Shown: positions 1,142 through 49,246 of the stretch, in pieces
Layout: each line of letters opens with the position of its first letter
Numbering within the stretch: the first letter of the stretch is position 1
NCBI GenBank assembly: GCA_048013815.1
Contig: CM106585.1
Location: forward strand, 20,522,001 to 20,586,000
Source of the DNA: Setoptus koraiensis
Lineage: Eukaryota; Animalia; Arthropoda
Length of the DNA: 64,000 bases
Reading direction: 5' to 3'
Notes under the pieces: generated by a model
The model's database searches: none
What the model was told of the DNA's origin: nothing
What the model saw: only the letters and a program-made list of their open reading frames with translations
Made by a program: the position numbers and the translations under genes

Positions 1142-2281
1142 TACTACCGCTACCTCAATGACCACAACCACCACCATTACTACCACTACTACAACTTCTG
1201 CTACTACTACTACTATTGCTATTACTAATACTATTACTATTACTTTGTGTGACATGCAATGAATAATCTTACATAATGTCCACATATGTAGTTGCAGTGA
1301 CTCATTTAATTTTGTGGCGTGATGGGTCCTGAGTGCTATTCTAGCCACAAATTGCCATCACAATCTACTTCTGTAAACTTCCAAACTAATGTCGTGTGTG
1401 TCGTCGACCACCTCAGCGTAGATACACTTTCTGCTTGAATAACTTGATCGTATCGTAGCTAACAGTTAGGTTTGAAAGATGACTCACACAACTCAATAAC
1501 ATTTGTTTGATTATTTCATCTTATTCTGAGAGAAACGTTTTTGATGTATAAAGGTAAACTACTGAGAATTGCTGTTCTTTCTGTTCTGATCTTATTTGTC
1601 GAATTACTTCTGCATCATGATGAGTGTGATTCTCTCCATACAGACAAAGAGATTATTATTCTCCTGTTCTTTGTCACAATTGTCTCTGTCGTCTCTATTT
1701 TATCGCAATAATCGATTTGGCTTCAACACTCATCAAATGTATGCGCTACATAAAACAATTCCAACAATCCGTTATACATGATGTACGCCAATATGTTCGC
1801 TCAGCAATCAATTCGCACATATCGTCAGTTTATTTAACTGCCAAGATTTGCATAAAGTCTAGACACTGATATATAACTATATAGTCATAAATTTTGCAAT
1901 AAGAGCAACGACGCAATGTACGGTGGCAACCAAGAGCAGTCAAACTAGAACATAGAGGATGGGAATCGATCAACGAAGCTTGCATTCCTACCAGGACTAG
2001 ATTTTCTATGCATCATACAATAGTTGCTGAATTGTTTTAATATGTTGCTGCTGTCCAAGTTTGAGATTCGTGAGAATGCATCCAGATCTATACTTATCAG
2101 TATATCGCCCGACAATTCAACTAGATCCTCTCCATACTACTGAACAAGATTGACGAACAAATATATTCAGGTAATCGCCACAAAACTGAATTTAATTATA
2201 CTAACTCAAGCAACAATTACACAATCACAATTTACAGATCCTACAAATGGCAACTTGCCGAACTCAGCGGCCTTTACGAAT

Positions 2282-5029
2282 ATGAATAATGCTATAACCA
2301 ATAGTTCTGGAGAGAATCAACTTGAAGATTATTTAGATACTTCTGTCACCAGGCCGCATCCTCAAGTTGTTCAATATCATCACACAACATTAACCGACGA
2401 GAGGTCAGAACAAAGAAATTCTACTCAGATCTTAACATATTCAGATGGTCATCATAGCAGTCATTCAGAAGATCAACAACCGTTACTACACCATCATAAC
2501 GTATCTATGAATAATCAATTCAACAACGATGCCAATGGAATCAACACTATGGTTGACCAAACTATGAACCAAACTCATCAGTTACAATTGATCAATATGC
2601 ACGATGTACAATACAATGTTCAACAAATTTATTGTCATAATCAGAATATCAATCAAATTATTCCTACCTCCAGCGACACCTCAAACCACTACGCAACAAC
2701 AAATAGGCAATCAACATCTCAGATCGGAGATATGCCGCAGACAGGCAAGGTGATTAGCCAGCACCAAGCCTCTGTCTGTATCATACCAGCGCCCTCAAGC
2801 ACCTGTCATATCAATTTAAGAAATCCAAACGAGCATTCGTTGCAGAATGGCTACAATGATTGTAATATTCAGGAAAACGGTTCAGTTAACACCAGTGATT
2901 GTATAAATAATTTCAGTAATGAATCTGAGAGTGGTTCAAAGCAACAAATCAACGCACTTCAATATCATCAACAATTGTATAGTCAACAACAAATTCAAGC
3001 ATCCAACGATAATCGAGAACAACATGTACAAAATAAACACAACCTTCCCGATAGTCCACCTGATTCCGGATCCGAGCATCCATATTCACCTGTACTGGAC
3101 GGTAATAACCTGTCTTCAATTAGTAGCAATCACGTGGAATTAACGCAAATAAATTCAAGCTTTATTGATAATGATAATTACTCATTTGAGCCTAACCAAA
3201 TCAATTTAACCGGTTCACCGGGTATATCACACAACAACGGAAGTGACTTATCACCATCGCGTCGTGCAAGCTCTAGTAATAAGATGAGCTCTTCCATTTC
3301 AAGCAACAATATTCATATATCAGATGGTCATCTTGATGAGATCAAAATGTTGCTGCACCAAGAAAGTTTAGAACAGTCTCTTGCTAATGGAGATGATAAC
3401 AGTTGTAACAAAAGACTCAGATTTGATACATTGTCAAAAGTCGATAATGATTGTAGATTATATAGCACAACACCAACAACTTTATACAAGAATGATATAC
3501 AATCATGTTCTAATGATAACTATAACATAACGAATCATCACGACTCATCAACAAAAACCTCGCCAGTAAGTAACATCGCTAGCCGTCATTCGAAGAAATC
3601 TACGATCGCCCTCAACACATTTATTATGTCGTCCACTGACCACTCTGGTAGCAAAGCAGCATCACCAGTATCAGGTCAATCTGAAGAGGGCGTCATTCAA
3701 CATTACAATCAGATGACGAGACAATTTGATTTTATTGGACTAAAACAAGAAAATGATTCCATCAATCATAATGTCACTAGTTGCATGATAAACTGTGGAT
3801 TAGATGAGCACAGTTGTTTTGACTTCAATAATCAAACAAATGACTCAAATCAAGTGTATCTGGAGTCTGGATTGAATCAATGTATAAGATTTACACCTTT
3901 TCAAGAAAACACTTGGTACAATGCATTCGATGAAAACCATTCCCCATTACCTATCCCTAAATATAGGGTCGATGCAGATAAAGGCTTCAATTTCAGCAAT
4001 GCCGACGAGGCATTTGTTTGTCAAAAGAAAAATCATTTTCAAGTCACAGTTTACATACAGCCCCTAGGTGATATGCGATTTATAGAGATCAATGGTCATA
4101 TGCATCGTATTGAGCACTTTTATATTCATTTTAATGGGGCTAAATCAGAAGCTCCAACGCAAATCATCAAAATAGAACAGTCACAATCGGATAGAAGCAA
4201 GAAACCGTTTCACCCGGTGATGATTGAATTAAGTCCAGAGCAATTAACGAAGACAACTGTCGGAAGATTGCATTTCAGCGAAACTACTTCAAATAATATG
4301 CGCAAAAAAGGAAAACCAAATCCCGATCAACGTTACTTTAACTTGGTTGTAACACTTTGTGCCCACATTGGTGATCAAACATACCCTCTGATAGCCCATG
4401 GATCAGATAAGATTATTGTTCGAGCATCAAACCCCGGACAATTTGAGAATGATCTTGAACTATCTTGGCAGAGAGGTCAATCTCACGACATCATATATCA
4501 TTCGGGTAAAGTTGGTATCAACACCGATAGCCCTGATGAGGCGTTGGTTGTCAACGGCAATATAAAGCTCTCTGGTCAATTAGTCCATCCATCCGATCAG
4601 AGAGCAAAGCAGGACATAAAAGAGGTCGACACGAGTGTATTGTTGAGAAACGTATCTAGTATACGACTTGTTAGATACCGGCTACGTCCGGAATTCGCTA
4701 AGAGTATTGGAATGAAGAGCGAAGAATTGTTAACTGGAGTGCTAGCTCAACAAGTAGGTCAAATTATTCCGGATGCTGTGAAAGAAGCTGGTTGTGTTAC
4801 ATTGGCCAACGGAGAAAGGATCGAGGACTTTCTGGTAATTAATAAGGATAGAATATTCATGGAGAATATTGGCGCAGTGAAAGAGTTGTGTAAATTAAAC
4901 GACAAGCTGGACACAAGAGTTCGTAATTTGGAACGTGCTAATGTTAAATTTAGATATATATTTGCGTTTTTGTTACTCTGTTTTCTTTTGTGTCCTATTA
5001 TATTGGATATATCTGTAGCCTTGCACTAA
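2282..5029 (+). CDS. MYRF: Myelin regulatory factor-like (NDT80-type DNA-binding domain + ICA/peptidase S74 autochaperone domain)
   Basis: Contains [14 protein letters not shown], the DBD motifs [28 protein letters not shown] and [26 protein letters not shown], the ICA motif HPSDQRAK (Ser...Lys dyad) and the coil [11 protein letters not shown]. First in-frame ATG is at 2282. A GT..TACTAAC..AG intron at 2171-2237 suggests a further upstream exon, so the true start is uncertain. Confidence 0.93.
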
Positions 5030-32595: not shown

Positions 32596-33471
32596 ATGAG
32601 TCATAACGAGTATACAGAGTATCAACACCTTCAACATCCAACTATGGGTTCATTACCCATGTTCACCTCAACAGGCCTAAATCTAACGGTTATGTCACAA
32701 GGCCACCATCCTGGCCATCAGTTATTATATCCTGTTGATATACACCAAGCCCCTGGACAACAACATCAGCAACAACAATTTCAACACCAAGCCCATCATC
32801 AACAACAACAACAGCAACACCAATTAGCCGTGGCTGTTGCACATCAACAACAACAACAAGCACAACAACAACAACAACAACAGCACCATCAACCTCAACA
32901 ACACAATCAACAAGGCCAACAACATAATCAACAGCAACAACAGCAACAACAACAACCACATCAGACTAAGAAACAGAAAAAACAAAAAGTTAATAAGGAT
33001 GGCATACCTGCGCCAAAAAGGGCCACCACAGCATATATTAATTTTACACAATGGTATAGAGAGGAACTTAAAAAAACTGGACGAACGATACCTAAAATTG
33101 GAGACTTTGGTAAGGAATGCGCTGCCAAATGGAATTCTATGGGCGAAGATGATAAACAACCATTCTTAGAAACAGCGCAACGAGATCGCGATCGTTACAA
33201 ACGCGAAATGGCCATATATAAACCAGCTAGGGATTCTAATAAACCTAAAAGACCCACAACGGCATTTATGCTTTTTATGGTGGACTTCCGAAAAGAAATG
33301 GCAGGCAAAGAACCAGAAGGTGGTGTTGCCGCATTAGCCAAAGCCGGTGGAGAAAGGTGGAGGCAGATGAGCGATGATGATAAACGGCCATATGTTGAAT
33401 TGCAAGGCGAAGAAAAAATCCGTTATGAAGCCAATATGGAGGAATACCGCCGCAAAGTCTGCATCGATTGA
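32596..33471 (+). CDS. Tandem HMG-box protein with N-terminal polyQ/H (HMGB / Dsp1-like)
   Basis: Two HMG boxes (PKRATTAYINF...KWNSM...KQPF and PKRPTTAFMLF...GERWRQMSDDDKRPY) follow a Gln-rich N-terminus, the architecture of Drosophila Dsp1. Confidence 0.9.
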   Translation: MSHNEYTEYQHLQHPTMGSLPMFTSTGLNLTVMSQGHHPGHQLLYPVDIHQAPGQQHQQQQFQHQAHHQQQQQQHQLAVAVAHQQQQQAQQQQQQQHHQPQQHNQQGQQHNQQQQQQQQQPHQTKKQKKQKVNKDGIPAPKRATTAYINFTQWYREELKKTGRTIPKIGDFGKECAAKWNSMGEDDKQPFLETAQRDRDRYKREMAIYKPARDSNKPKRPTTAFMLFMVDFRKEMAGKEPEGGVAALAKAGGERWRQMSDDDKRPYVELQGEEKIRYEANMEEYRRKVCID

Positions 33472-36743: not shown

Positions 36744-36884
36744 TAGACACTTTCAAATCAAATCAATCCAGTTCATATCTACGTTCTGATCGGACTACAT
36801 CCAGGCGCTTGAAAGATATCCATATACTTCCATTTGAATACTACTTATTCGCCAAACTATAGTCTCCCAATAAGACATTATAAA

Positions 36885-37625
36885 ATGAGCACTTCAGAAG
36901 ATAAGAGCAATTCTACAAACGGTTTAGTTCAGAATCCAGTGCAAAATACAGCGCAAAATATAGTGGAGGGTTCAGTACAAAATCCACTTGGTGTTGATGG
37001 TATTGTTTTTCAATATCCAATACCCAAGTTTTATGGAAAATATTTCGTCGTTTGGAAGGCAAGAATGAGAGCAGTGTTGACCCTCAAAGGTCTAGAAACG
37101 GTATTAGAAACAACGTTAGAGGAAGGTTCGCGCAAGGATCATTTAGCCAAGGCGATATTGCTAACTGGATTGGATGCTAAACAGGTTAGACTGGTGCTCA
37201 GTTGTAAGACATCAAAACAAATTTGGGATCGTCTGTGTTTGATCTACGAAAATAAATCAGGTTACTTCGAACTCAATCTGAGACGAGAATTCTCCAGCAT
37301 ACAATTCGGCCAAAATGAACGAATGATCAACTTCATCTCAAGAGCATTATATATAGTGGGTCAGTTGGATAGCATCGGCGCAAAAATTAGTGAAGAATCG
37401 GTGGTCTCGAAAATATTAGATAGTCTGCCCGAAGAGTATCATCAGTTAGCAATAAGTTTTGACGTGGGGAAGGATTCTGAACGAACACTAGATAATCTAA
37501 TAACCAGGTTATTGAAGCAAGAGAAAATCTTGAAGGATTCCGAAGAATCGAGATTCAAATGTTTTGAGTGTCGTCGACCGGGACACTATCGAAGAGATTG
37601 CCCAAATCGCAACAACAGTCAATAG
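36885..37625 (+). CDS. Ty1/copia-type Gag-only protein (capsid-like region + one CCHC zinc knuckle)
   Basis: PKFYGKYFVVWKARMRAVL, AKAILLTGL, KTSKQIWDRL and KILDSLPEEY motifs, then CFECRRPGHYRRDC and a stop 7 residues later. ATG is in an AAAATG context. No pol follows. Confidence 0.88.
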   Translation: MSTSEDKSNSTNGLVQNPVQNTAQNIVEGSVQNPLGVDGIVFQYPIPKFYGKYFVVWKARMRAVLTLKGLETVLETTLEEGSRKDHLAKAILLTGLDAKQVRLVLSCKTSKQIWDRLCLIYENKSGYFELNLRREFSSIQFGQNERMINFISRALYIVGQLDSIGAKISEESVVSKILDSLPEEYHQLAISFDVGKDSERTLDNLITRLLKQEKILKDSEESRFKCFECRRPGHYRRDCPNRNNSQ

Positions 37626-38410: not shown

Positions 38411-39346
38411 CGCTGATAAATCGCTCAATGTGGATGTGGATGGATATGTCTAAATATAAATCGAGCTCGAGGTGACTAATTATCACTAAACTTGTGATTG
38501 GTTTTTACTACTAGGTTTTTTGCATGCAATGATGTCACACAAAGTCCTTTTTCAAATTGCTGGAGCTTTATGTTCAACAAGGTACCTGTTGTTATCGCAA
38601 CAATAGCTTCGATTTCTCAAATCAGCTTCTTTCCTCTTTTGATTTGCGTAAATCGTCGCCATTTATTTACCTGTAGATCGGACTCTTTATTAATGCCATA
38701 AAGCGGTTAGTTTATTGTTGCACGCAGCATTCAAGAGATGGATCAATTGGGACATCTCTTTATCCATGTTGAATACTATTACAAATAATCATAATAATTA
38801 TAATAATAGCAAATGAACATCGCACATCGCCCACCAAGTAACAACACGTAGTTTAACAAACTGAGATCATTTGATCTTCTTACAAGAACAACAACTAAGA
38901 TTCCGATCGATAAACGTAAAATTATCCACATTTAAATGTGTCGTTATCACAAAACATAATCTCCATCTATTAAGATTCCCCTACTACAATACATATCACT
39001 ATGGCTTGTCGCAAAATTAGTGTCCATCAGATCAACAGTGAGTGGGTTAAGTTTTGATTCGACCGGATTAATCTTGTGTTGATTTCGTCTCTTACATAAC
39101 TCTAGGAATAATAATCCTAACATCAATCCAAACGTATTGTTGTCTTGTCATTATAACACAGAAATCGTCATCTATAACACAATAATATTAGGTAAGTTGT
39201 TGCAATTGATTATTCACTAATGATAGTAGTCTCAAACGATCACTTAAACGCACATCTTTAAATAATCACGCAATCAAGAGAGAATCACCATCGATCTATC
39301 TTGTCTTAACACCACTCACTCTTGCAGTCAACTTTCTAATCTCTAG

Positions 39347-39893
39347 GTCAATATTACAATGTCAATTAGAGAGAGACCCAGCAACCAACAATCATAATAA
39401 TTTATATGAAAAACTATTGGGTAAAGTGCCTACAGGTGAAAATGGTAAAGCTCCCAGGCCAGAATGTATCATACTTAAAGACATTGGGGTGAATGATCTA
39501 AGTGTAAATGATGTTGTAGTTAGAAGTGCCACATCCAGCCTTGTTTGTATAAAGGCTAGATTTTCGTTAGCTATCAAAGTTGAGGCACAACTAGAACATT
39601 ACAATAACGATGATCCATTCAGTGGTAGAGATGGCACTGACAAAAATGATCTGATACTATTAGGCTATTTACCCCTGGATTCTGTGGTCAGCGTAGATGA
39701 TAATTGCTACGAGCCTCCATCGGACAAGAAAAAGAAATCGCCGGCAGCAGAAAATGGTGAGCAAAAAGATAAGCTCAGCAGACAAACAAGCCTACCTTCG
39801 CTGGCTGATAAACCGGAACTTACCATAGAATTTGTCTGTGGTAAGCTGACGTTCACCTTCCGCTTAAACATGAAGGTTGCGGAAGGACAATAG
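39347..39893 (+). CDS. Probable terminal coding exon of an unidentified gene
   Basis: Frame is open from the acceptor CTCTAG| (~39346) to TAG at 39891-39893, with complex globular-looking sequence. There is no in-frame ATG near the start. Confidence 0.45.
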
Positions 39894-40519
39894 TATGTAG
39901 AAAATGCTTAATGATAGCATATTCAATGTGAAGTAATATCAAATTGAAATATCGAAAAGAAACAAAGAAGAAACCCCTTCAAATGAACCCATAAAGACCT
40001 ACCTAATGCCGGTACAATATGAGTGAGCGAATCAAAGAAATCTGTCGAAAATACCTTCGACCACAATCGATATAGGTACATTTATATAATTTTTGAGGCT
40101 GCGGACCTCAACCAATGTAGACGTATAACACTGCGGATGATATGGAGATCTACATGTAACAGAAACCATTATATTCAAGTACATGTGATATGTACGAAAC
40201 GAAACCCTATCAATTTGAGGCTGCTACTAAGAAACTACCAACCAAAAATAAAATCAAATAAAATGTCGAATAAAAATTCACTAGTATAAGATCATGTCTG
40301 TAGTACCCTCTCAAAAACAAGTTAATTAAAAAATGTAACCTAAGACCAGTAACGCAAAGAAACACCAAGAAGACAAGCCAAAACCACACTGCAAATCTTC
40401 CGTACAAAATACAAGTAATACTGATCAAATCAGTATTTCGAGCGCTTAATTTTTCGTGTGGACAAGTATTGTTGAAGGATTCAAAGGAGTTTATAACAAC
40501 CTGTTAACCACCGAACTTC

Positions 40520-41626
40520 AAAATGTGACCATCGAACATAGACCATCGAACACTGACCACCGAACATCGAACGAGCAGCTGAAACTATCATCAGAAATTC
40601 GAATTTTCAATTTTGAATTTCGAAGTTCGAAGTGTGACCATCGAAATCTGCACGATCACCTGGAACTCGTATCGAAAATTCGAATTTTCAATTTCGAATT
40701 TCCAAGTTCGACGTTCGGAATTTGACCATCGAACTATGACCATCGAACATCGAACGAGCAGCTGAAACTATCATCAGAAATTCGAATTTTCAATTTTGAA
40801 CTTCGAAGTTCGAAGTGTGACCATCGAATTGTGACCATCGAACATCGAACTCTGACCATCGAACTCCGACAATGCAGCTGAAACTATCATTGGGAATTCA
40901 AATTTTCAATTTCGAATTTCGAACTTCGAATTGTTACCACCGAACACTGACCATCGAACATCGAACTCTGACCATCGAACTCCGACAATGCAGCTGAAAC
41001 TATCATTGGGAATTCAAATTTTCAATTTCGAATTTCGAACTTCGAATTGTGACCATCGAATTGTGACCACCAAACTCTGACCATCGAACATCAAACGAGC
41101 AGATGAAACTATCATTGGGAATTCAAATTTTCAATTTTCGAATTTCGAATTTTGAAGTTCGAATTGTGACCATCGATTTGTGACTATCGAACATCAATCT
41201 CTGACCATCGAACATCGAACGAGCAGCTGAAACTATCATCAGAAATTCGAATTTTCAATTTTGAATTTCGAAGTTCGAAGTGTGACCATCGAATTGTGAC
41301 CACCGAACTCTGACCATCGAACATCAAACGAGCAGATGAAACTATCATTGGGAATTCAAATTTTCAATTTTCGAATTTCGAATTTTGAAGTTCGAATTGT
41401 GACCATCGATTTGTGACTATCGAACATCAATCTCTGACCATCGAACATCGAACGAGCAGCTGTAACTCTTATCAGAAATCTGAATTTTCAATTTCGAAGT
41501 TCGAATTGCGATCATCGAATTGTGACCACCGAACTCTGACCATCGAACATCGAACGAGCAGATGAAATTCTTATAAGAAATTCGAATTTTCAATTTTGAA
41601 GTTCGATTTGTCACCACCGAACTCCG
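40520..41626. repeat. TCGA-rich satellite/minisatellite array, about 10 units of ~100-125 bp
   Basis: The anchor CAG(C/A)TG(A/T)AA(C/T)T recurs at 40576, 40759, 40875, 40991, 41100, 41224, 41333, 41457 and 41559, with one degenerate unit near 40660. Units are built from GACCATCGAAC and TTCGAA sub-repeats. Confidence 0.95.
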
Positions 41627-42264
41627 CACAAATGTGACCTAGTCAAATCTCCATAGGATTGCATACAAAATATTTTCGAGTGAAGCGATAATAGACCAAG
41701 TCGAATCTACATAGGAATACATGTGTTATGTCTAGCAGGATTCTCACAAATTTGACTAAGTCAAACCTCCATAGGATTACATAGTCACGTGAATAAACGT
41801 AGAGCCCAGAACCATCCCAATAGCTGCTTAATTAAAATTAAGCGCTAAAAATGGACACTCTTCTCTCACTCACCTTGTATAATTGGGTTCGGCAGTCCCT
41901 TCCGGTCCTCCACATCCCTCCTCTCGCTTGACCATATTTTTTAAAAAAGAAAAATTTATAATAAAACACAAAATGTACAACTAAAGAAACTACTTTTCGT
42001 CAAATAAAACGTCGAAGATCATGTCTGTACCCTATCAAAACCAGGTTAATTAAAAAATGTAACATAAGACCCGTAACGCGAAGAAATAACAAAAAGGTAA
42101 AACATAACCACACTTCATATTGTATATTCAAGTACATGCGATGTGTACGAAACGAAACCCTATCAATTCGAGGCTGCGGACCTCAACCATTGTAGTGAGA
42201 AGTTCAAACGAGGACGTTTGAAAATTAAGGTGGGGCGTATGTTAAGACTATGCGTCACCTCCCT

Positions 42265-42407
42265 AGTCCGGACTGGACTGCGCCAAGTCCGACTGCGAGT
42301 ACGGACTTGGACTGGCGCAGTCATACCTGCAGTCTGGACTTAACTGCGCCAAGTCCAGACTCAGTCTTCGGACTGGGACTTGCAACTTCATGGTGCCAGT
42401 CCCAGTC
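42265..42407. repeat. Cluster of inverted repeats built from GGACT/AGTCC
   Basis: Palindrome AGTCCGGACT (42265-42274) and perfect stems at 42276-85/42313-22, 42331-41/42351-61 and 42371-80/42398-407. Confidence 0.9.
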
Positions 42408-42461
42408 AAGTCCCCATCACTAACTGCATACTGCGTTCCAAGGCTCAATCTCGAATTCTAA

Positions 42462-43202
42462 GTAAACCGATGTTATTTTTGCAATGAGGGTATAACCTTG
42501 GAATCCTGGCCAACACACTCGCAAGATTGCGTTGATTGGCCATCCGACATACTACAGAGACCGGCGAACGTCGCGTCAGAACCCAGGGTAGATGTCCTGG
42601 AAAGGGATAAGGTGACCCTCGTAAGCGACCCGCCAAGTCAAGATAAATATGAGAGACCCTACAGGAAAATCGAATTCTTCCGCGACGGAAAGATACCGAG
42701 AGGGGCATCTAATAAAGTAGCTGGCCATGCCGAGCCGGGGGATTCTGTGGCTAGACTATATTATCAAGCGGCTAGACTTGTACCTGGGTCAAACTCGAAC
42801 GAGATAACGCTAGTACTACATCGACATCAAGTGCTCCATAGAACGGCCAAAGTAGGCGAAGCTTTCAAAGACCCGTATAGTTCAGTATCAGTCGTACTAA
42901 ACAAGAACATCCGCAACTACAGAGATAAGAGGATGAGGTTGACACTCGAATTGGACTCCCAAAGAAACTCTACCGAGCCCAGTCCAGGGACTTCGTCCCA
43001 ACCGGTAGCTCGACTTTATTATCAAGCTGCTAGACTAGCACCTGGTTCGAACTCGAATGAAATAACTCTGGTATTGCATCGACACCAAGTACTTCATAGG
43101 ACGGCTATAGTAGGCGAATCTTTCAAAGATCCTTATAACTCGGTGTCAGTCGTCGATGGCGAAGCAGTATCACAAGAATTTCTGAAAATGTTCTCACCGT
43201 AA
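42462..43202 (+). CDS. Uncharacterised protein (or exon) with a C2HC-type zinc finger and a tandemly duplicated 50-aa domain
   Basis: Open frame of 246 codons after TAA at 42459. It contains C-x2-C-x11-H-x3-C at 42471-42530 and repeats at 42747-42896 and 43005-43154 (46/50 aa identical, 22 synonymous codon differences). No ATG near the 5' end. Confidence 0.7.
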   Translation, partial: VNRCYFCNEGITLESWPTHSQDCVDWPSDILQRPANVASEPRVDVLERDKVTLVSDPPSQDKYERPYRKIEFFRDGKIPRGASNKVAGHAEPGDSVARLYYQAARLVPGSNSNEITLVLHRHQVLHRTAKVGEAFKDPYSSVSVVLNKNIRNYRDKRMRLTLELDSQRNSTEPSPGTSSQPVARLYYQAARLAPGSNSNEITLVLHRHQVLHRTAIVGESFKDPYNSVSVVDGEAVSQEFLKMFSP

Positions 43203-44297
43203 GTTTCGAAGTTCGACTTGTGACCATCAAACTCTGACCATCGAACTTCGACGAAGCAGCTGAAACTCATTTCAGAAAATCGAAATTTCAAGTTCGAAGT
43301 TCGAATTGTCATTGATCTTGATTAAGCAGTAGCCTTCTGCTGTGCTTAACTCATCTAGCTAGCATCTCAGCATTGAGCGTGCTAATCGCGTCTAGTTAGT
43401 GTTTCTCCCTAAATTTAACTGAACAACTTCATAGGCTTTGATTGTTCGAAATTAATCTAGTTTGTTCCTCATAGTGAAGCCTTGACCATGCTATTTTTCC
43501 AGATTTGTTCCACCTACGTGAATAAACGTATCCATCCGACCCACATCAATAGCTTCTTGATTAAAATTAAGCGCTTTAAATCAATTAGAGCGTGTCATTG
43601 CTGCGCATCAGACCAACTGATTGAGAGCACTGATGAAGGCACTGTAGGCATAATGCACACGAAAGATGTGAACATCCATACTGACATGGATACTAACGCG
43701 TGAATGTCCATGTTCACATGGACATCAACAGGTAACTGTCCAACAAGGTAACCTAGTTAGGTGGTAGTGTCAGAAGGGGCTGGCTACAGACTATCTGTTC
43801 TCAACTGATCGAGCTGAGTGCGAAAATTGAATGAATGAAAATGAGAGAAAAATACACGGACGTGTCGTAACGGGAAGATTGTTATCAAAAAATGCCAAAG
43901 ATCGCCACGGTTAGAAAGACGTTAAACTGGAATTCGAACGATTAGGAAAATTATCGATTCCTGGTGGCACACATGATCTATGAACAAGCAGAGGATTGAG
44001 ACGATGCAGATCAAGCTCTCCTCTTCACGGATCACTGTTTCCAAAAAATGCAGAGCTCTAAGAACTAAATTGTCACTATTGAAAGCAAGAGGCTGTAAAG
44101 AAGAGAATGAGGGGCGTAGACAATTCGAGGTGAGAACCCTGTCAAAGAGGGCACAATGGCAAATACTTCAGGATCCTTTGCATACTCTTCGACTTCATGA
44201 CTTGCTGTCCACATCAGATGATGAATCATAAGAATCATGCTGTGAATATATTACTAACGAGTCTACTCAGATCCAATGATGACTTATATATTTATTA

Positions 44298-44804
44298 CTA
44301 TTTGCTGGTTACAGTAGGGCCTCCAATGAATTGACTGGTCGAATTAAAGGGGGGTGCATGATAGGAGCATTTTCTGATCACGTCAATTGTTTTTACATAG
44401 TATGAATCATCAGGGCAACGCATTCTTATGCGCTTCTGTTTGAATTTTGTTGCATGACAACACTGGCTCCCACACGACCCGGAACACTCACTGAGCCTAA
44501 TTTGCCGTGTCGATCTACAGCCCAAACCATCCTCGTAATGCTGTTTAATTCGCCTTCGCGTACATGTGGGTATTCTGGGCAAATAATTTGCAATATCCAG
44601 ATCATAGTGCCGATGATCACTACCGCCGGAGAGATAAGATTTTTCAACTGTGGCGAGTTGACTATTTCTATGTTGAACGTCGACCAATGATCGTACATTA
44701 CCTTGCTGAAGCAGCCTCTCGATCACATCATTTGGATTCTCCTGCCTAGAAAATTCTGGATTTTTTGATGTGGCTCCTCTGGGTGCTGCCGCCATGGTCG
44801 ACAT
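44298..44804 (-). CDS. Slit-type C-terminal cystine-knot domain ORF (probable last Slit exon)
   Basis: CTRRRIKQHYEDGLGCRSTRQIRLSECSGSCGSQCCHATKFKQKRIRMRCPDDSYYVKTIDVIRKC parallels the Slit CT domain and lies on the same strand, downstream of the Slit EGF exon. Confidence 0.75.
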   Translation of the reverse strand: MSTMAAAPRGATSKNPEFSRQENPNDVIERLLQQGNVRSLVDVQHRNSQLATVEKSYLSGGSDHRHYDLDIANYLPRIPTCTRRRIKQHYEDGLGCRSTRQIRLSECSGSCGSQCCHATKFKQKRIRMRCPDDSYYVKTIDVIRKCSYHAPPFNSTSQFIGGPTVTSK

Positions 44805-45145
44805 GATCTGCCGGAAGTCGCTATTATTAGTGAATACTATTCAGGAATCCAGAGAAAACAAAACGGAAGGAAACGGAAAGAAATTCGGTTAGCACAATAT
44901 TATTGTCAAGTATTTGAAAATTTCTGAAGATGCGACATTAGATGAGTCTAGGATTTGAATCGGCTGAGGTAATTCGCTCATTGATCGCTACTGCACGAGA
45001 ATCTATCGCATTTCCATGGAGTGAGAACTTGCTTCGAGCATCAAAACTAGGATTCTATCGCTGTATCTGACATTGTGAGAAAATCAAGCTAGACTCGAAT
45101 GAGAAAGCTGTAACGATCCGTTCTTAGTGCTTTGTGTACCGGGAT

Positions 45146-45911
45146 TGATCACGAGGTGATCAGTCGAGATACACGGTTGCACTCACAAAATTATCAATTT
45201 AAAAGTGTAGATTATACTGTCTAGCACTTGGTCTAGACAGTAAACAGTCAATAAAAGCGCTGTCACATTTTTCAATGGGGCAGAGTTTTTCTAGGTCAAA
45301 TACGACTCACATCGTCATTTTGTTATTGCTTGAACAGCGCTCGATTTTACGAGTTTCATGTGTAACGTTTAGATACTTTAACACAGGGACTCAAAAACAT
45401 CGTCAGTGCGGATGGCTGAGGGCGAGGCCTGGAACCCGGAGCGCTCATCAACTCTACCCGAAGGGTTCCCGTCGCGTGCAGTTGTCGCGGAAGCGACGAC
45501 GGAGATATGACGGCCTCCAAGATACGAGGCTGCATGCCGAGCACTCAGAACAATCGCAGGCTGAATTTTCTAACTTCCGGTCTCCCAACTCCTGAAATAT
45601 CATTATAACTGGGAAACCGGAAGTTGTGCAGAACTGAAAATTACTTCATCGTGTTGTTTGAAACGACAGTCTGGTAAGTCTCACAGAAGGTTGTCAGCTC
45701 TCTTGATACAAGTTCACGTAAAAACGGAACCGGAAGTTTTCGCAATTCCAGACCGATTTTCCAGATGGTTTTGGGTCAAGATAAACTGGGTAACGAACAG
45801 CTGGTAGCCAAAAGTGAATGTGAAATCAATTTTTGATACAGTATCAGACTACTTATTGACACCATTTTTAATTAGTGTAGCCGTGTATCAAGACTGATCA
45901 CGAAGTGATCA
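45146..45911. mobile_element. 766-bp non-autonomous element with 37-bp imperfect TIRs, each ending in a hairpin
   Basis: Ends 45146-45182 and 45875-45911 are inverted repeats (30/37), each containing TGATCAC-nnn-GTGATCA. Internal CCGGAAGT motifs recur. No TSD identified. Confidence 0.6.
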
Positions 45912-46704
45912 GTAAGATCGCTACAGCACGCGCTAGAACTACAGTGTATCGTGTATATCGTTGAAAACTGGTGCCAACAGTCTAATCCTCGTAAACTGAT
46001 CGCGCAATTGGCAAATCTCGTCATGGACAATCAAATATTGTGGACTACAGCATGCTGCATGCATGTCAGCATCAGCCAACCAAACAGCCTCCAGCCAGCA
46101 AACAGGCATCATTGCCTTTTTCGAGATAGTTTACAGGGGAAACTCATCTTAAGTAGAGAACAATCGCATGAATATGATTACAAAGCCGACCGAAGTATCT
46201 CGGCGTATCAACTGAAGCTAGATGGTTGGCTGACATGCGAATGTCGGGTAGCTCATTTGAGACAAATGAGACAAATAGATTCACTGTCGGATATTTAGAT
46301 AGTTGCGCCCTTCAAGAACTCTAGTCCAATTGAGTGACCCGCTGCTCGAATCGATAATTCGAGCTATTTATCGTTCAACCTTCGTCTTTAGTTCCAGGAC
46401 CTCCGAACAAGAGATGTCGATGGTCAACCGGATTGGTTAATTGAACCGAAGCCAAAATCAGCACGGTTAACCAGTGGGTGGCACTTCCGTTTCGGTTTCT
46501 ACACTCATTCGAACAGTCGACTCGTTTAGATTTTGATTTCATCATCTTTGATAATCTCATCTCTCTCACTTTGATTATTTAGTCCTCAATCATCAGAAAA
46601 TTTGATTTATAAGCGAACTACTGAATGAGAGGTGCACTAGATAAGCGGCACATAGGTGCCCTATTGCCAATCCATGAGTTATAATAATTAATGTTTGGAC
46701 TTAC

Positions 46705-49246
46705 CTGTTGTTGTGTTGGTTGATGTTTGCTGCAATTGTTGGTCCGATGCCACTGATGGGAGATAGTCTGATTTTGAGCCGACCATTGCCATGGCTACAG
46801 ACGCAATGAGAACTTCACAGTATTCACCTGTCGTCTGGCTATCAACGCACTGACATTTGTACGAATTAATTCCGTCAATGCATTTGGCCTTATTCTGGCA
46901 TTGATGATCTTGGCAATCGTCGATATTAATTTGACATCTGTCGCCGCTGAAACCTAGCGGACATTCACAAGTGAATGCAATTGATGAGCCTTGTTTGTTC
47001 GGCAGCGATAACGACTTGCAAGTGGCACCATTCTGGCATGGCCTCTCGAAACAAGCATCGATAACAAACTCGCAATTGCGACCATAATTGTCTGCTTGAC
47101 ACTGACAATGATATTCCATATTTGGCAAACTCTTACAAGTGGCTCCATTCTGACACGGATTCTCATGGCAGGCATCGCATTTGTTCTGGCCACCGGAGGC
47201 CACTATGCTGTTGTCAGTTATATTGTTCAATATCTCATTTGACATGCAGTCAAACTGACTGAGAGGAGCCGTCAGCAGAAGTTTGTCGCGCATTTGTGAT
47301 GGTTGGGAGCATTTAGCTATACCAGCCTCTACATAGTCGCGCTGAATCCATTCGGCTAACCATCTTAGATGACAGTCGCAATATAACGGATTTGAGCCTA
47401 ATGCCAGATGGGTCAATGATGGCAATTGTCGATAGCTGCTAGCCGGCAATGAATTCAAATTGTTGCCATGCAATGACAAAACTCGCAACGATTTCAAGCC
47501 GGCAAAACTTTCCTCCTGGATGCATTGCAATTTGTTGTAGCTCAGTATGAGCATCTGCAATTTTGTCAAATTAACAAATTGATATTCCGGTATGTAGTGC
47601 AGACGATTGTTGCTCATATCCAACAGAGTCAGCTCTTTCAGTTGTCTGATTGAGGCCGAGGGTATTGTTTTGATTTCGTTGTCATTGACAAACAGTTCGG
47701 TAGTGTCTTCGTCAACATCCTTTGGAAAATCAATCAATTTTTGGCCCGTACAATTAACCAATTGTTCCGCTAGATGGCAGTTACATTTGTGTGGACAATT
47801 GGGCCCATTGGAGCAAAAATATTCAAAATATTGCAATGTTTGTTTTGGGTCAGTTTGCTGTATAGAAGCCGACTGAATCGCTGTAGAATGAGGCGTCTGC
47901 TGATTATCGGTCGATGATAATAGAGCCAATTGATTTGGTTGAGATCGTTGCTGCTGACTGTCATGATTGTTGTCCAATGTTGCCGAGGCCATATCTGCCG
48001 CCATTAATTCGGTTGGCATGTTATTGTTGTTGTTAGATATTAGAGCAATATTATTGTTAATGTTGTTGTCGCCATTAGTCACTTGCCAAGGTTGATCCGA
48101 TTGATCGCATTGAAATTCGCGCAATTCTATTTCCATTAGGCTGACATCATGCAATTGCTTGGGTTGGGCACATTTAGGATTGCCATAATCCAAGCCATTC
48201 ACTGAGGCCCGTTGCGACAGCCACCTTGGCAGCCATCTAAGGTGACAGTTGCAATTGAGCGGGTTGGCCATTAGTTGTAATGTGCGCAATTGATTTAATT
48301 GATCGAGTGTGCCCTCCATCATGCAACGAATTTTGTTGTCATACAATGACAGATAGCTCAATTTTGGAACATATTTAAATGTGTCATTGAGCACGCACGA
48401 CAATTGATTTGATTTCAATATAAGCGCCTCCAGTTGATCTAATCCTTTGAACATTGATGCTCTCAGATGGCGCAATTGATTGTGGGACAATGATAGGTCG
48501 CTCAGTGACGAGGCGCCCTCGAAGGTGCCATCTTCAATGTCGATTATATCGTTGGAGCGCAAGTCACTTGTGGCATCGGATTATTTATTATTTTATGACA
48601 GTCATTTTATGTCACCATGTGCGCGATGATGAGCGGTGTTCCATGGATAATATTGTTACCCACGAATGGCATATGTAAAGTATATAGGGGCGAGACACAA
48701 AAGAGAAGGTTATTTATGTTGGATGAGCAACTGGGACGGAGATGTTAATTCAAAATGAATTCAATACTAACAGCCGCTGAAGATTGGTCAATCGCTTAAA
48801 TAGGCCTGTGTTGCGCAACTTCCTGATGCGATTGTCGCTAAGACGGAGTTCTGTGGCAAACAGTGGAACATCGTCGGGTATTTCGGTGAGAGATTGGCGC
48901 GAACAATCAACAATTGAACCCTCACACACGCACCCGAGCGGACATTGGGCGACCTGGGTGCACTGGTTGTCGAATTTGGTGCGCATATCCTCTAGGCCTA
49001 ATTAGACAGCGTGCAAGGCATTTCGCAATAACAGTCACATAACAGATTGCACGAGGTGATGTTCGTGGTTGCGCAACGCGATCCGTTATCATGATGACAT
49101 TGTTTTGATCAGAATGGCCATTGGCCACACCGAGTTATTAGTGGCGGCGGGGAGCAAGAGGCAACGTCATAATACAGATAGAGTGCCACAGAGGCAAGAA
49201 ATGGATGACATGTCATCATTTTGGGCATTTCGCGACACAATTACGT

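Follow-up and report, generated by a model that had tools for sequence, protein, structure and literature searches.

RNF125, RNF114, RNF138 and RNF166, and likewise the N-termini of TRAF6 and RAG1, combine a RING with a C2HC zinc finger that comes after it. In RNF125-type proteins the C2HC finger lies about 25–30 residues after the RING, and C2H2 fingers and a ubiquitin-interacting motif stand C-terminally. The C2HC finger of RNF125 supports the contact between RING and E2. The subject of the present description is an open frame at positions 42462–43202 (+) of a stretch of 64,000 nucleotides (referred to below, at its full length, as the window) of the arthropod Setoptus koraiensis (Eukaryota; Animalia; Arthropoda; GenBank assembly GCA_048013815.1, contig CM106585.1, positions 20,522,001–20,586,000 of the forward strand). 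On balance the frame is best read as a relic, present in one copy, of an intronless gene encoding a protein composed of RING, C2HC finger and ubiquitin-like domain (RING-C2HC-UBL), now situated in a HINE/DINE-1-like repeat. Rather than a live system, it probably represents what remains of a ligase gene borne by a mobile element or virus.

The order RING, then C2HC finger is common to the RNF125-type proteins and to the family of the window frame. The window finger conforms to the RNF125 type, but the window RING is absent. In place of C2H2 fingers and ubiquitin-interacting motif, the family has a ubiquitin-like domain, followed by an acidic-Trp tail. ISG15, FAT10 and linear di-ubiquitin share the β-β-α-β-β topology of residues 66–146 of the window protein, with sequence identity of only 11–20%. 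Conjugatable ubiquitin-like modifiers carry a C-terminal Gly-Gly; none is present in the window protein, which is therefore not a conjugatable modifier. Its units end in ...SVSVVL and ...SVSVVD and then run on into the linker or the tail. PCGF proteins and BMI-1 possess an N-terminal RING and a C-terminal RAWUL domain, a layout like that of the family; the likeness is one of analogy, not of membership. PCGF proteins are without the C2HC finger, their template-modelling (TM) scores are low (0.2–0.3), and sequence similarity in the ubiquitin-like part is absent. The parts of the frame are as follows.

42462–43202 (+): open frame; C2HC finger, ubiquitin-like domain, linker and second half-domain of the RING-C2HC-UBL family; no RING, no usable ATG.
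42471–42530 (+): C2HC zinc finger (C4, C7, H19, C23), counterpart of the RING-following finger in RNF125 and TRAF6.
42657–42899 (+): complete ubiquitin-like β-grasp domain, residues 66–146, predicted as β-β-α-β-short helix-β.
42747–42896 (+): repeat copy 1, helix α1 to last strand of the ubiquitin-like domain.
42897–43004 (+): linker of 36 codons; its first part (NKNIRNYRDKRMRL) aligns with the conserved post-domain segment of the relatives.
43005–43154 (+): repeat copy 2, a half-domain without the first β-hairpin; low-confidence model (predicted local distance difference test, pLDDT, 46–56).

In translation the frame is open from 42462 (+) over 246 codons, with TAA at 43200–43202. Comparison of 42747–42896 with 43005–43154 gives 24 of 50 codons identical, 22 synonymous and 4 replacement (V/A, K/I, A/S, S/N), which agrees exactly with the hand alignment in the original prediction. 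Nucleotide identity between the units is 122/150; 22 of the 28 differences are at third positions. By Nei–Gojobori count there are 38.8 synonymous (S) and 111.2 nonsynonymous (N) sites with 24 (Sd) and 4 (Nd) differences, so that the proportions are pS 0.62 and pN 0.036, and synonymous divergence (24 of 38.8 sites) is close to saturation (Fisher p = 8e-14; binomial against neutrality, 5e-11). Three standard estimators in Biopython give dN 0.037–0.049 and dS 1.07–1.30 between the units. The formal dN/dS analysis thus upholds the strong purifying selection that had been predicted (pS 0.62 against pN 0.036). The flanks of the units show no nucleotide similarity and are unalignable, the longest local match being 7 nt. 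The tail of L001, one of the relatives described below, matches the linker region 42849–43031 (E 1.7e-6). Judged by its codon-level pattern, the frame is true coding sequence that, following a duplication long ago, was moulded by strong purifying selection. In GC content at third positions and in codon composition the frame is not distinguishable from host genes. An internal intron skipping one repeat copy is rejected; the reading frame would not be kept.

The sequence CYFCNEGITLESWPTHSQDC is found at 42471–42530 and has the motif C-x2-C-x11-H-x3-C. Invariant in the family alignment are C4, F6, C7, H19, C23, W26 and P27. The window finger lines up with the RNF125 finger in the family-profile match and is of the TRAF/RNF125 C2HC type, in accordance with the UBZ/TRAF-like spacing pointed out in the original prediction. 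A Pfam scan of the window frame gives no match at E up to 10, including the models zf-TRAF (PF02176), PF18439 and RING. In the Atlas feature search the zf-TRAF, TRAFD1-XIAF1 and UBZ clusters are reached at only 0.78–0.80, the level of a lead.

In the AlphaFold2 model of the window protein, residues 66–146 have pLDDT 80–93. Top matches in Foldseek against the PDB are linear di-ubiquitin and ISG15, both ubiquitin-like proteins of two domains. Superposition on the C-terminal domain of ISG15 (6xa9_D) gives TM 0.80 and a root-mean-square deviation of 2.6 Å over 83 columns. By model and superposition, the 50-residue unit is the C-terminal half of a ubiquitin-like β-grasp domain, beginning with helix α1 and ending with the last strand. 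The statement that the domain could not be assigned no longer holds, given the AlphaFold2 and Foldseek assignment to a ubiquitin-like β-grasp half. A fold search of BFVD yields nothing beyond generic ubiquitin folds.

Relatives are not found by a word-indexed search of 5.8 billion proteins, either with the frame or with the family alignment. An exhaustive HMMER scan gives eight unannotated relatives (E 2e-38 to 2e-5), all from short Logan or ENA contigs and none from NCBI or UniRef. The protein is accordingly not the orphan it was taken for; it is the RING-less C-terminal two-thirds of a family with eight relatives. These are 220–300 aa in length, and the window protein aligns from their residue 78–96 on (from residue 30 in P0006). 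In the alignment a RING is seen in 7 of 8 relatives; P0006 begins after the RING. The seven begin with a C3HC4 RING, which a short linker connects to the C2HC finger; a variable spacer with SDP at its end then leads to a single domain that includes the unit, and a basic RR(L/M) segment and a disordered tail close the protein. The relatives carry one copy of the 50-aa unit as against two in the window frame. In four relatives the tail ends in an acidic-Trp motif (EEW, DEW, ESW), as it does in L001 when the reading is continued out of frame.

The family profile matches RNF125 (8gbq_B) at E 3.8e-7 over RING, linker and C2HC finger, and more weakly TRAF6 (E 2.3e-5), PCGF5 (E 3.7e-5, RING only), BRCA1 and RBBP6. 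A full-length model of P0005 shows a RING-finger module (pLDDT 81–94), a flexible linker, a ubiquitin-like domain at residues 138–216 (pLDDT 84–90) and a disordered tail. AlphaFold DB neighbours of P0005 are PCGF3, PCGF6, BMI-1, Su(z)2-like, RNF166-like and TRAF-like proteins and RAG1. The members are probable E3 ligases that combine a RING-plus-finger module of the RNF125/TRAF6 type with a single β-grasp domain and a tail of the acidic-Trp kind. Lesions are present in the two closest relatives: in L001 the frame changes near position 1335, and L002 contains an in-frame TGA, read through by its gene caller. In the analysis the pieces of such broken relatives were taken separately. Homologues full of stops and frameshifts had been named in advance as an argument against current function; the frameshift of L001 and the in-frame stop of L002 bear this out in part. 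The deposited protein P0002 is not translatable from L002:123–1019 under the standard code; TGA after ...HLKCH is read as Trp, and a frame shift occurs later. P0009, a RING protein encoded on a compact eukaryotic contig, is unrelated and is excluded from the family.

The window copy is truncated at both ends. Two features bear on its 5′ side.

42459–42461 (+): in-frame TAA, directly preceding the first homologous codons.
39860–39913 (+): possible degenerate RING remnant PLKHEGCGRTIVCRKCLM; hidden Markov model (HMM) of the family N-terminus 13.6 bits, E 0.008; marginal.

Family homology sets in abruptly at 42468. The first in-frame ATG of the frame is codon 156. The lack of a 5′ ATG, pointed out in the original prediction, is thereby confirmed (TAA at 42459–42461, first ATG at codon 156). 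An ATG-started mini-frame of 23 codons (MVPVPVKSPSLTAYCVPRLNLEF) at 42390–42461 (+) is in frame with the main frame, with only the TAA 42459–42461 between; this TAA is also present in the contig of a second individual. No RING exon is found in the 64-kb window by tblastn with the eight relatives or by the HMM of the family N-terminus, apart from the marginal remnant of 18 aa at 39860–39913. None of 30 shuffled sets reaches its 13.6 bits; two come to about 13 (best 13.1). The remnant is without the first Cys pair, is followed by stops and lies 2.6 kb upstream of the frame. It overlaps, in a different reading frame, the end of an open reading frame of 158 aa at 39417–39893 (+). This 158-aa frame is rejected as the RING exon, its 'EFVC' being in another frame; it has no Pfam match, resembles Ig-like, ASH or MSP-type ciliary-protein domains weakly in the Atlas (0.69), and possibly forms the final exon of a different host gene. 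At the 3′ side no downstream exon supplies the acidic-Trp tail, including after the donor-like CC/GTAAGT at 43199.

The surroundings are composed of repeats.

40441–41846 (+): HINE/DINE-1-like element ('module A') with the subterminal inverted repeat AGCGCTTAATT at both ends and a 116/233-nt satellite inside (40512–41633).
42027–42195 (+): 'head' blocks of module B, 83–95% identical to 40092–40396 of module A.
42228–42440 (no strand): cluster of four hairpins directly 5′ of the frame; -54.7 kcal/mol, z -7.1, 0/200 shuffles.
43193–43331 (+): single satellite monomer covering the last codons and stop of the frame; depth climbs to 9,700–31,800.
43516–43581 (+): tail block, with the second 3′ subterminal repeat at 43565–43575 (−).

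Exact AGCGCTTAATT occurs in the window at three sites only, 40441 (+), 41836 (−) and 43565 (−), and the 3′ subterminal repeat at 43565–43575 (−) has no 5′ partner between there and 41846. Read depth in the genome's own DNA run is about 195x over the frame and over adjoining unique DNA. At 41640–42037, 43033–43629 and 45222–45818 it is 50–500 times the single-copy level, and in the flanks it is 10,000–100,000x. The frame, at about 195x between flanks of 10,000–100,000x, is therefore single copy within pieces of a high-copy repeat. Direct repeats, the 116/233-nt satellite and read depth all agree with the predicted location inside a repeat element. Gene fragments are carried by non-autonomous elements derived from Helitrons/Helentrons (DINE-1/HINE). 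The frame is situated between blocks shared with module A, which resembles these elements in its paired subterminal repeats (AGCGCTTAATT) and central satellite, and the flanks are of high copy number. In contrast to them, module B has a 3′ subterminal repeat only, and no second cargo-bearing copy of the element is seen. The segment 45222–45818 is a repeat of very high copy number, its depth reaching about 85,000. In some contigs an end at 42455 is joined to a start at 45718/45720 with 6–8 extra letters, the matched sides being 22–32 nt, which suggests that the hairpin block and the 45222–45818 repeat are neighbours in other copies. Rfam gives no match over 39000–46000.

A deoxynucleoside kinase gene (dNK; Pfam dNK, E down to 1e-44) stands directly upstream of the RING gene in 4 of 4 contigs that include upstream DNA. 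The pairs span L001:2–1550, L003:1026–2529, L004:2–1203 and L011:41–972, with gaps between the end of dNK and the RING gene of 364, 29, 165 and 11 nt, respectively. Identity of the gene products across the four contigs goes down to about 28%. Both genes are intronless, co-directional and compactly arrayed. The nearest relatives of the kinases are 45–59% identical and are again on short contigs. The open reading frame before dNK in L003 (L003:3–998) is Cys-rich in its N-terminal part and continues with a coiled coil and, at the C-terminus, a membrane anchor, an envelope-like layout, with no Pfam or PDB match. On L008:2–3095 short overlapping frames are followed by dNK and, 20 nt further on, by a gag-like (CCHC) aspartic-protease frame. 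This frame combines a Retrotrans_gag-like region with a CCHC knuckle and a motif of aspartic proteases, and Drosophila Arc1 and HIV nucleocapsid are its best matches in the PDB. On L009:433–1423, 18 nt past dNK, the first 36 codons of a frame resemble, by eye, the N-terminus of the L008 gag. L003, L004, L008 and L009 are all from one metagenome.

The adjacency of dNK and the gag-protease frame after sister dNKs point to a retroelement or virus as the carrier. From gene order and sequence, the family would be cargo of such a mobile element or virus; this would account for the lack of members in annotated proteomes and for their presence in low-coverage assemblies. The L008/L009 array may be retroelement- or pararetrovirus-like, with its own nucleoside kinase. 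Several observations weigh against taking such a carrier as proven. The gag and protease scores of L008 are under the curated Pfam cut-offs, so that the gag-protease identity is suggestive only. RING-UBL and gag are never on one contig among those found. In the Atlas feature search the L003 dNK groups with dNKs of giant viruses (0.96). IMG/VR and JGI metagenome contigs, scanned with three alignments or proteins, contain no relative. In the literature searched, no dNK-bearing long-terminal-repeat element and no such accessory ligase were found. At the locus itself the window holds no significant dNK and no relative of the L008 gag-protease frame or of gene 1 of L003; the sole gag nearby is of an unrelated copia type (36834–37625). 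A dNK remnant at 39697–39825, collinear with the RING-like remnant, is rejected (E 0.16, third among chance matches). Retroviral dUTPase, and Vpx/Vpr acting on SAMHD1, offer a functional analogy to an adjacent pair of dNTP-feeding kinase (dNTP, deoxynucleoside triphosphate) and ligase-like protein; the array is absent from the window.

Among assembled contigs no RNA run contains the frame; as a control, an HMG-box gene 10 kb away is present in 14 RNA-labelled runs. Three small unlabelled runs also contain 100% of the words of the control gene, none of which contains the frame. The only runs that contain the frame are X1–X3, with flat depth over intergenic sequence; on account of this flat depth they behave as DNA, not RNA. 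X2 is a second individual, from the same data as X3. Against the window, X2 has the replacements E71K, F72S (core), P79L, A183P and P246L and three synonymous changes, and one codon is lost within the conserved strand ITLVL. Heterozygous sites in X1 are V144I and two synonymous sites. Replacements make up 5 of 8 or 6 of 11 recent changes, which departs from omega 0.04 (p = 8e-4 and 6e-4) and is compatible with neutrality (p = 0.29 for 5/8, 0.09 for 6/11). Recent variation fits neutrality and rejects the historical constraint. Given the neutral-like variants of the second individual and the lack of a transcript, the selection recorded between the units is not present-day; the low dN/dS is a mark of historical selection. 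The functional domain supposed earlier is not supported for today: RING, ATG, tail and RNA runs are missing, and recent variation is neutral-like.

The history that the favoured reading would require is as follows. In an ancestral or donor lineage the duplicated architecture would have been under long selection, with both units translated and constrained over most of the period since their duplication, giving the low dN/dS. The window copy would have lost RING, start codon and tail, kept the finger, ubiquitin-like domain, linker and second half-domain, and become stranded between the head and the satellite and 3′ end of a HINE/DINE-1-like rolling-circle repeat. The fragment may have been carried or trapped by the rolling-circle repeat, or insertions of repeats may have broken up a resident intronless copy. 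The second route is the one favoured by the RING-like remnant, itself marginal, that lies 2.6 kb upstream. Some facts fit poorly with a dead copy. All 246 codons of the frame remain open and every family-invariant residue is in place, while the putative RING remnant is badly decayed, and this difference would fit selection that still acts on the portion lacking the RING. The variants are few, and a single X2 contig of low depth (4.5x) supplies them. Over 42464–42859 the X2/X3 contig is 2.3% divergent, against <=0.3% in flanking contigs, roughly a tenfold difference, and it departs from the reference after 42859, its last 260 nt not being on the window. A divergent allele, a rearrangement and a paralogue are all conceivable. 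Rare, low or tissue-restricted expression is compatible with absence from assembled RNA contigs.

An alternative, unlikely as a whole, is a live, domesticated host gene. Here an upstream exon would be spliced to 42462, and the product, a RING-less protein of finger and tandem (1.5x) ubiquitin-like module, would serve a ubiquitin pathway as adaptor or decoy, for example in blocking the ligase of the parent element. The intact 246-codon frame with all invariant residues, the very old duplication with omega about 0.04, an AG exactly at the homology boundary, a putative RING remnant much more decayed than the frame, and a second apparently RING-less member (P0006) speak for such a gene. It is at odds with the absence of an ATG and the stop right upstream, with a candidate acceptor (TTCTAAG/, put forward in the original prediction) whose AAG is weak by splice-site consensus, with the absence of the frame from RNA runs in which neighbouring genes are present, and with recent changes that are unbiased to synonymous sites and strike conserved core positions; the family's conserved tail is missing, and no searched proteome has an annotated orthologue. 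Still more speculative, and improbable to a greater degree than either the host gene or the chimera considered next, is a wider reading: dNK and RING-C2HC-UBL would be the accessory pair of an undescribed invertebrate retroelement or virus, the kinase raising dNTP pools and the ligase removing a host restriction factor, and the window copy would be a RING-less decoy or inhibitor with a tandem ubiquitin-like module, retained by the host and expressed only in an unsampled tissue such as the germline.

A different origin of the two units is also conceivable, and is rather less probable than the host gene. Two paralogues or lineages that had already diverged would have merged by unequal recombination or template switching, and the low dN/dS would have been accumulated in separate parent genes and would carry no information on a duplicated architecture. 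Flanks of the units that cannot be aligned, beside cores that are 92% identical in protein, are in keeping with this, as are the single-unit relatives and the diverged copies of the family or array within one metagenome (L003, L004, L008, L009); linkage to a retroelement would make template switching by reverse transcriptase plausible. Compared with the closest relatives, however, the two units have derived residues in common (YQAARL.PGSNSNE, LHRHQVLHRTA) and are on this account each other's nearest kin. The genome's own reads contain no second copy at >=90% identity, and the linker matches the segment that normally follows the domain in the family, exactly as a simple internal duplication predicts. 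An accidental open frame, or an antisense slit 3′ untranslated region without coding history, has a negligible probability. The frame does lie 1.1 kb past the slit stop codon on the opposite strand, but relatives at E 2e-38 and a family HMM at E 3e-54, a third-position bias of p = 5e-11 and a confidently folded domain refute it.

Other genes of the window are as follows. At 44298–44804 (−) and 46688–48562 (−) are the last exons of a slit-type gene (leucine-rich repeats, epidermal growth factor-like modules, cystine-knot-like C-terminus). A two-HMG-box protein is encoded at 32596–33471 (+) and a MYRF-type factor (NDT80 + Peptidase_S74 + MYRF_ICA) at 2150–5029 (+). The copia-type gag at 36834–37625 (+) has a zinc knuckle.

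The family is a variant on known RING ligases, ubiquitin-like domains and element-borne accessory genes, and the window feature, read as a relic, is a truncated member of it. A striking dN/dS inside one frame can be an inheritance from a donor lineage and is not necessarily a sign of present function. The window fragment, probably dead, points to an unannotated family in which an RNF125/TRAF6-type module is joined to a ubiquitin-like domain and which is linked to dNK and, through dNK, to gag-protease arrays. If these arrays are retroelements or viruses, they would possess their own dNTP-supply enzyme and their own ligase, in parallel to the lentiviral Vpx–SAMHD1 logic, and this would be testable in invertebrates.

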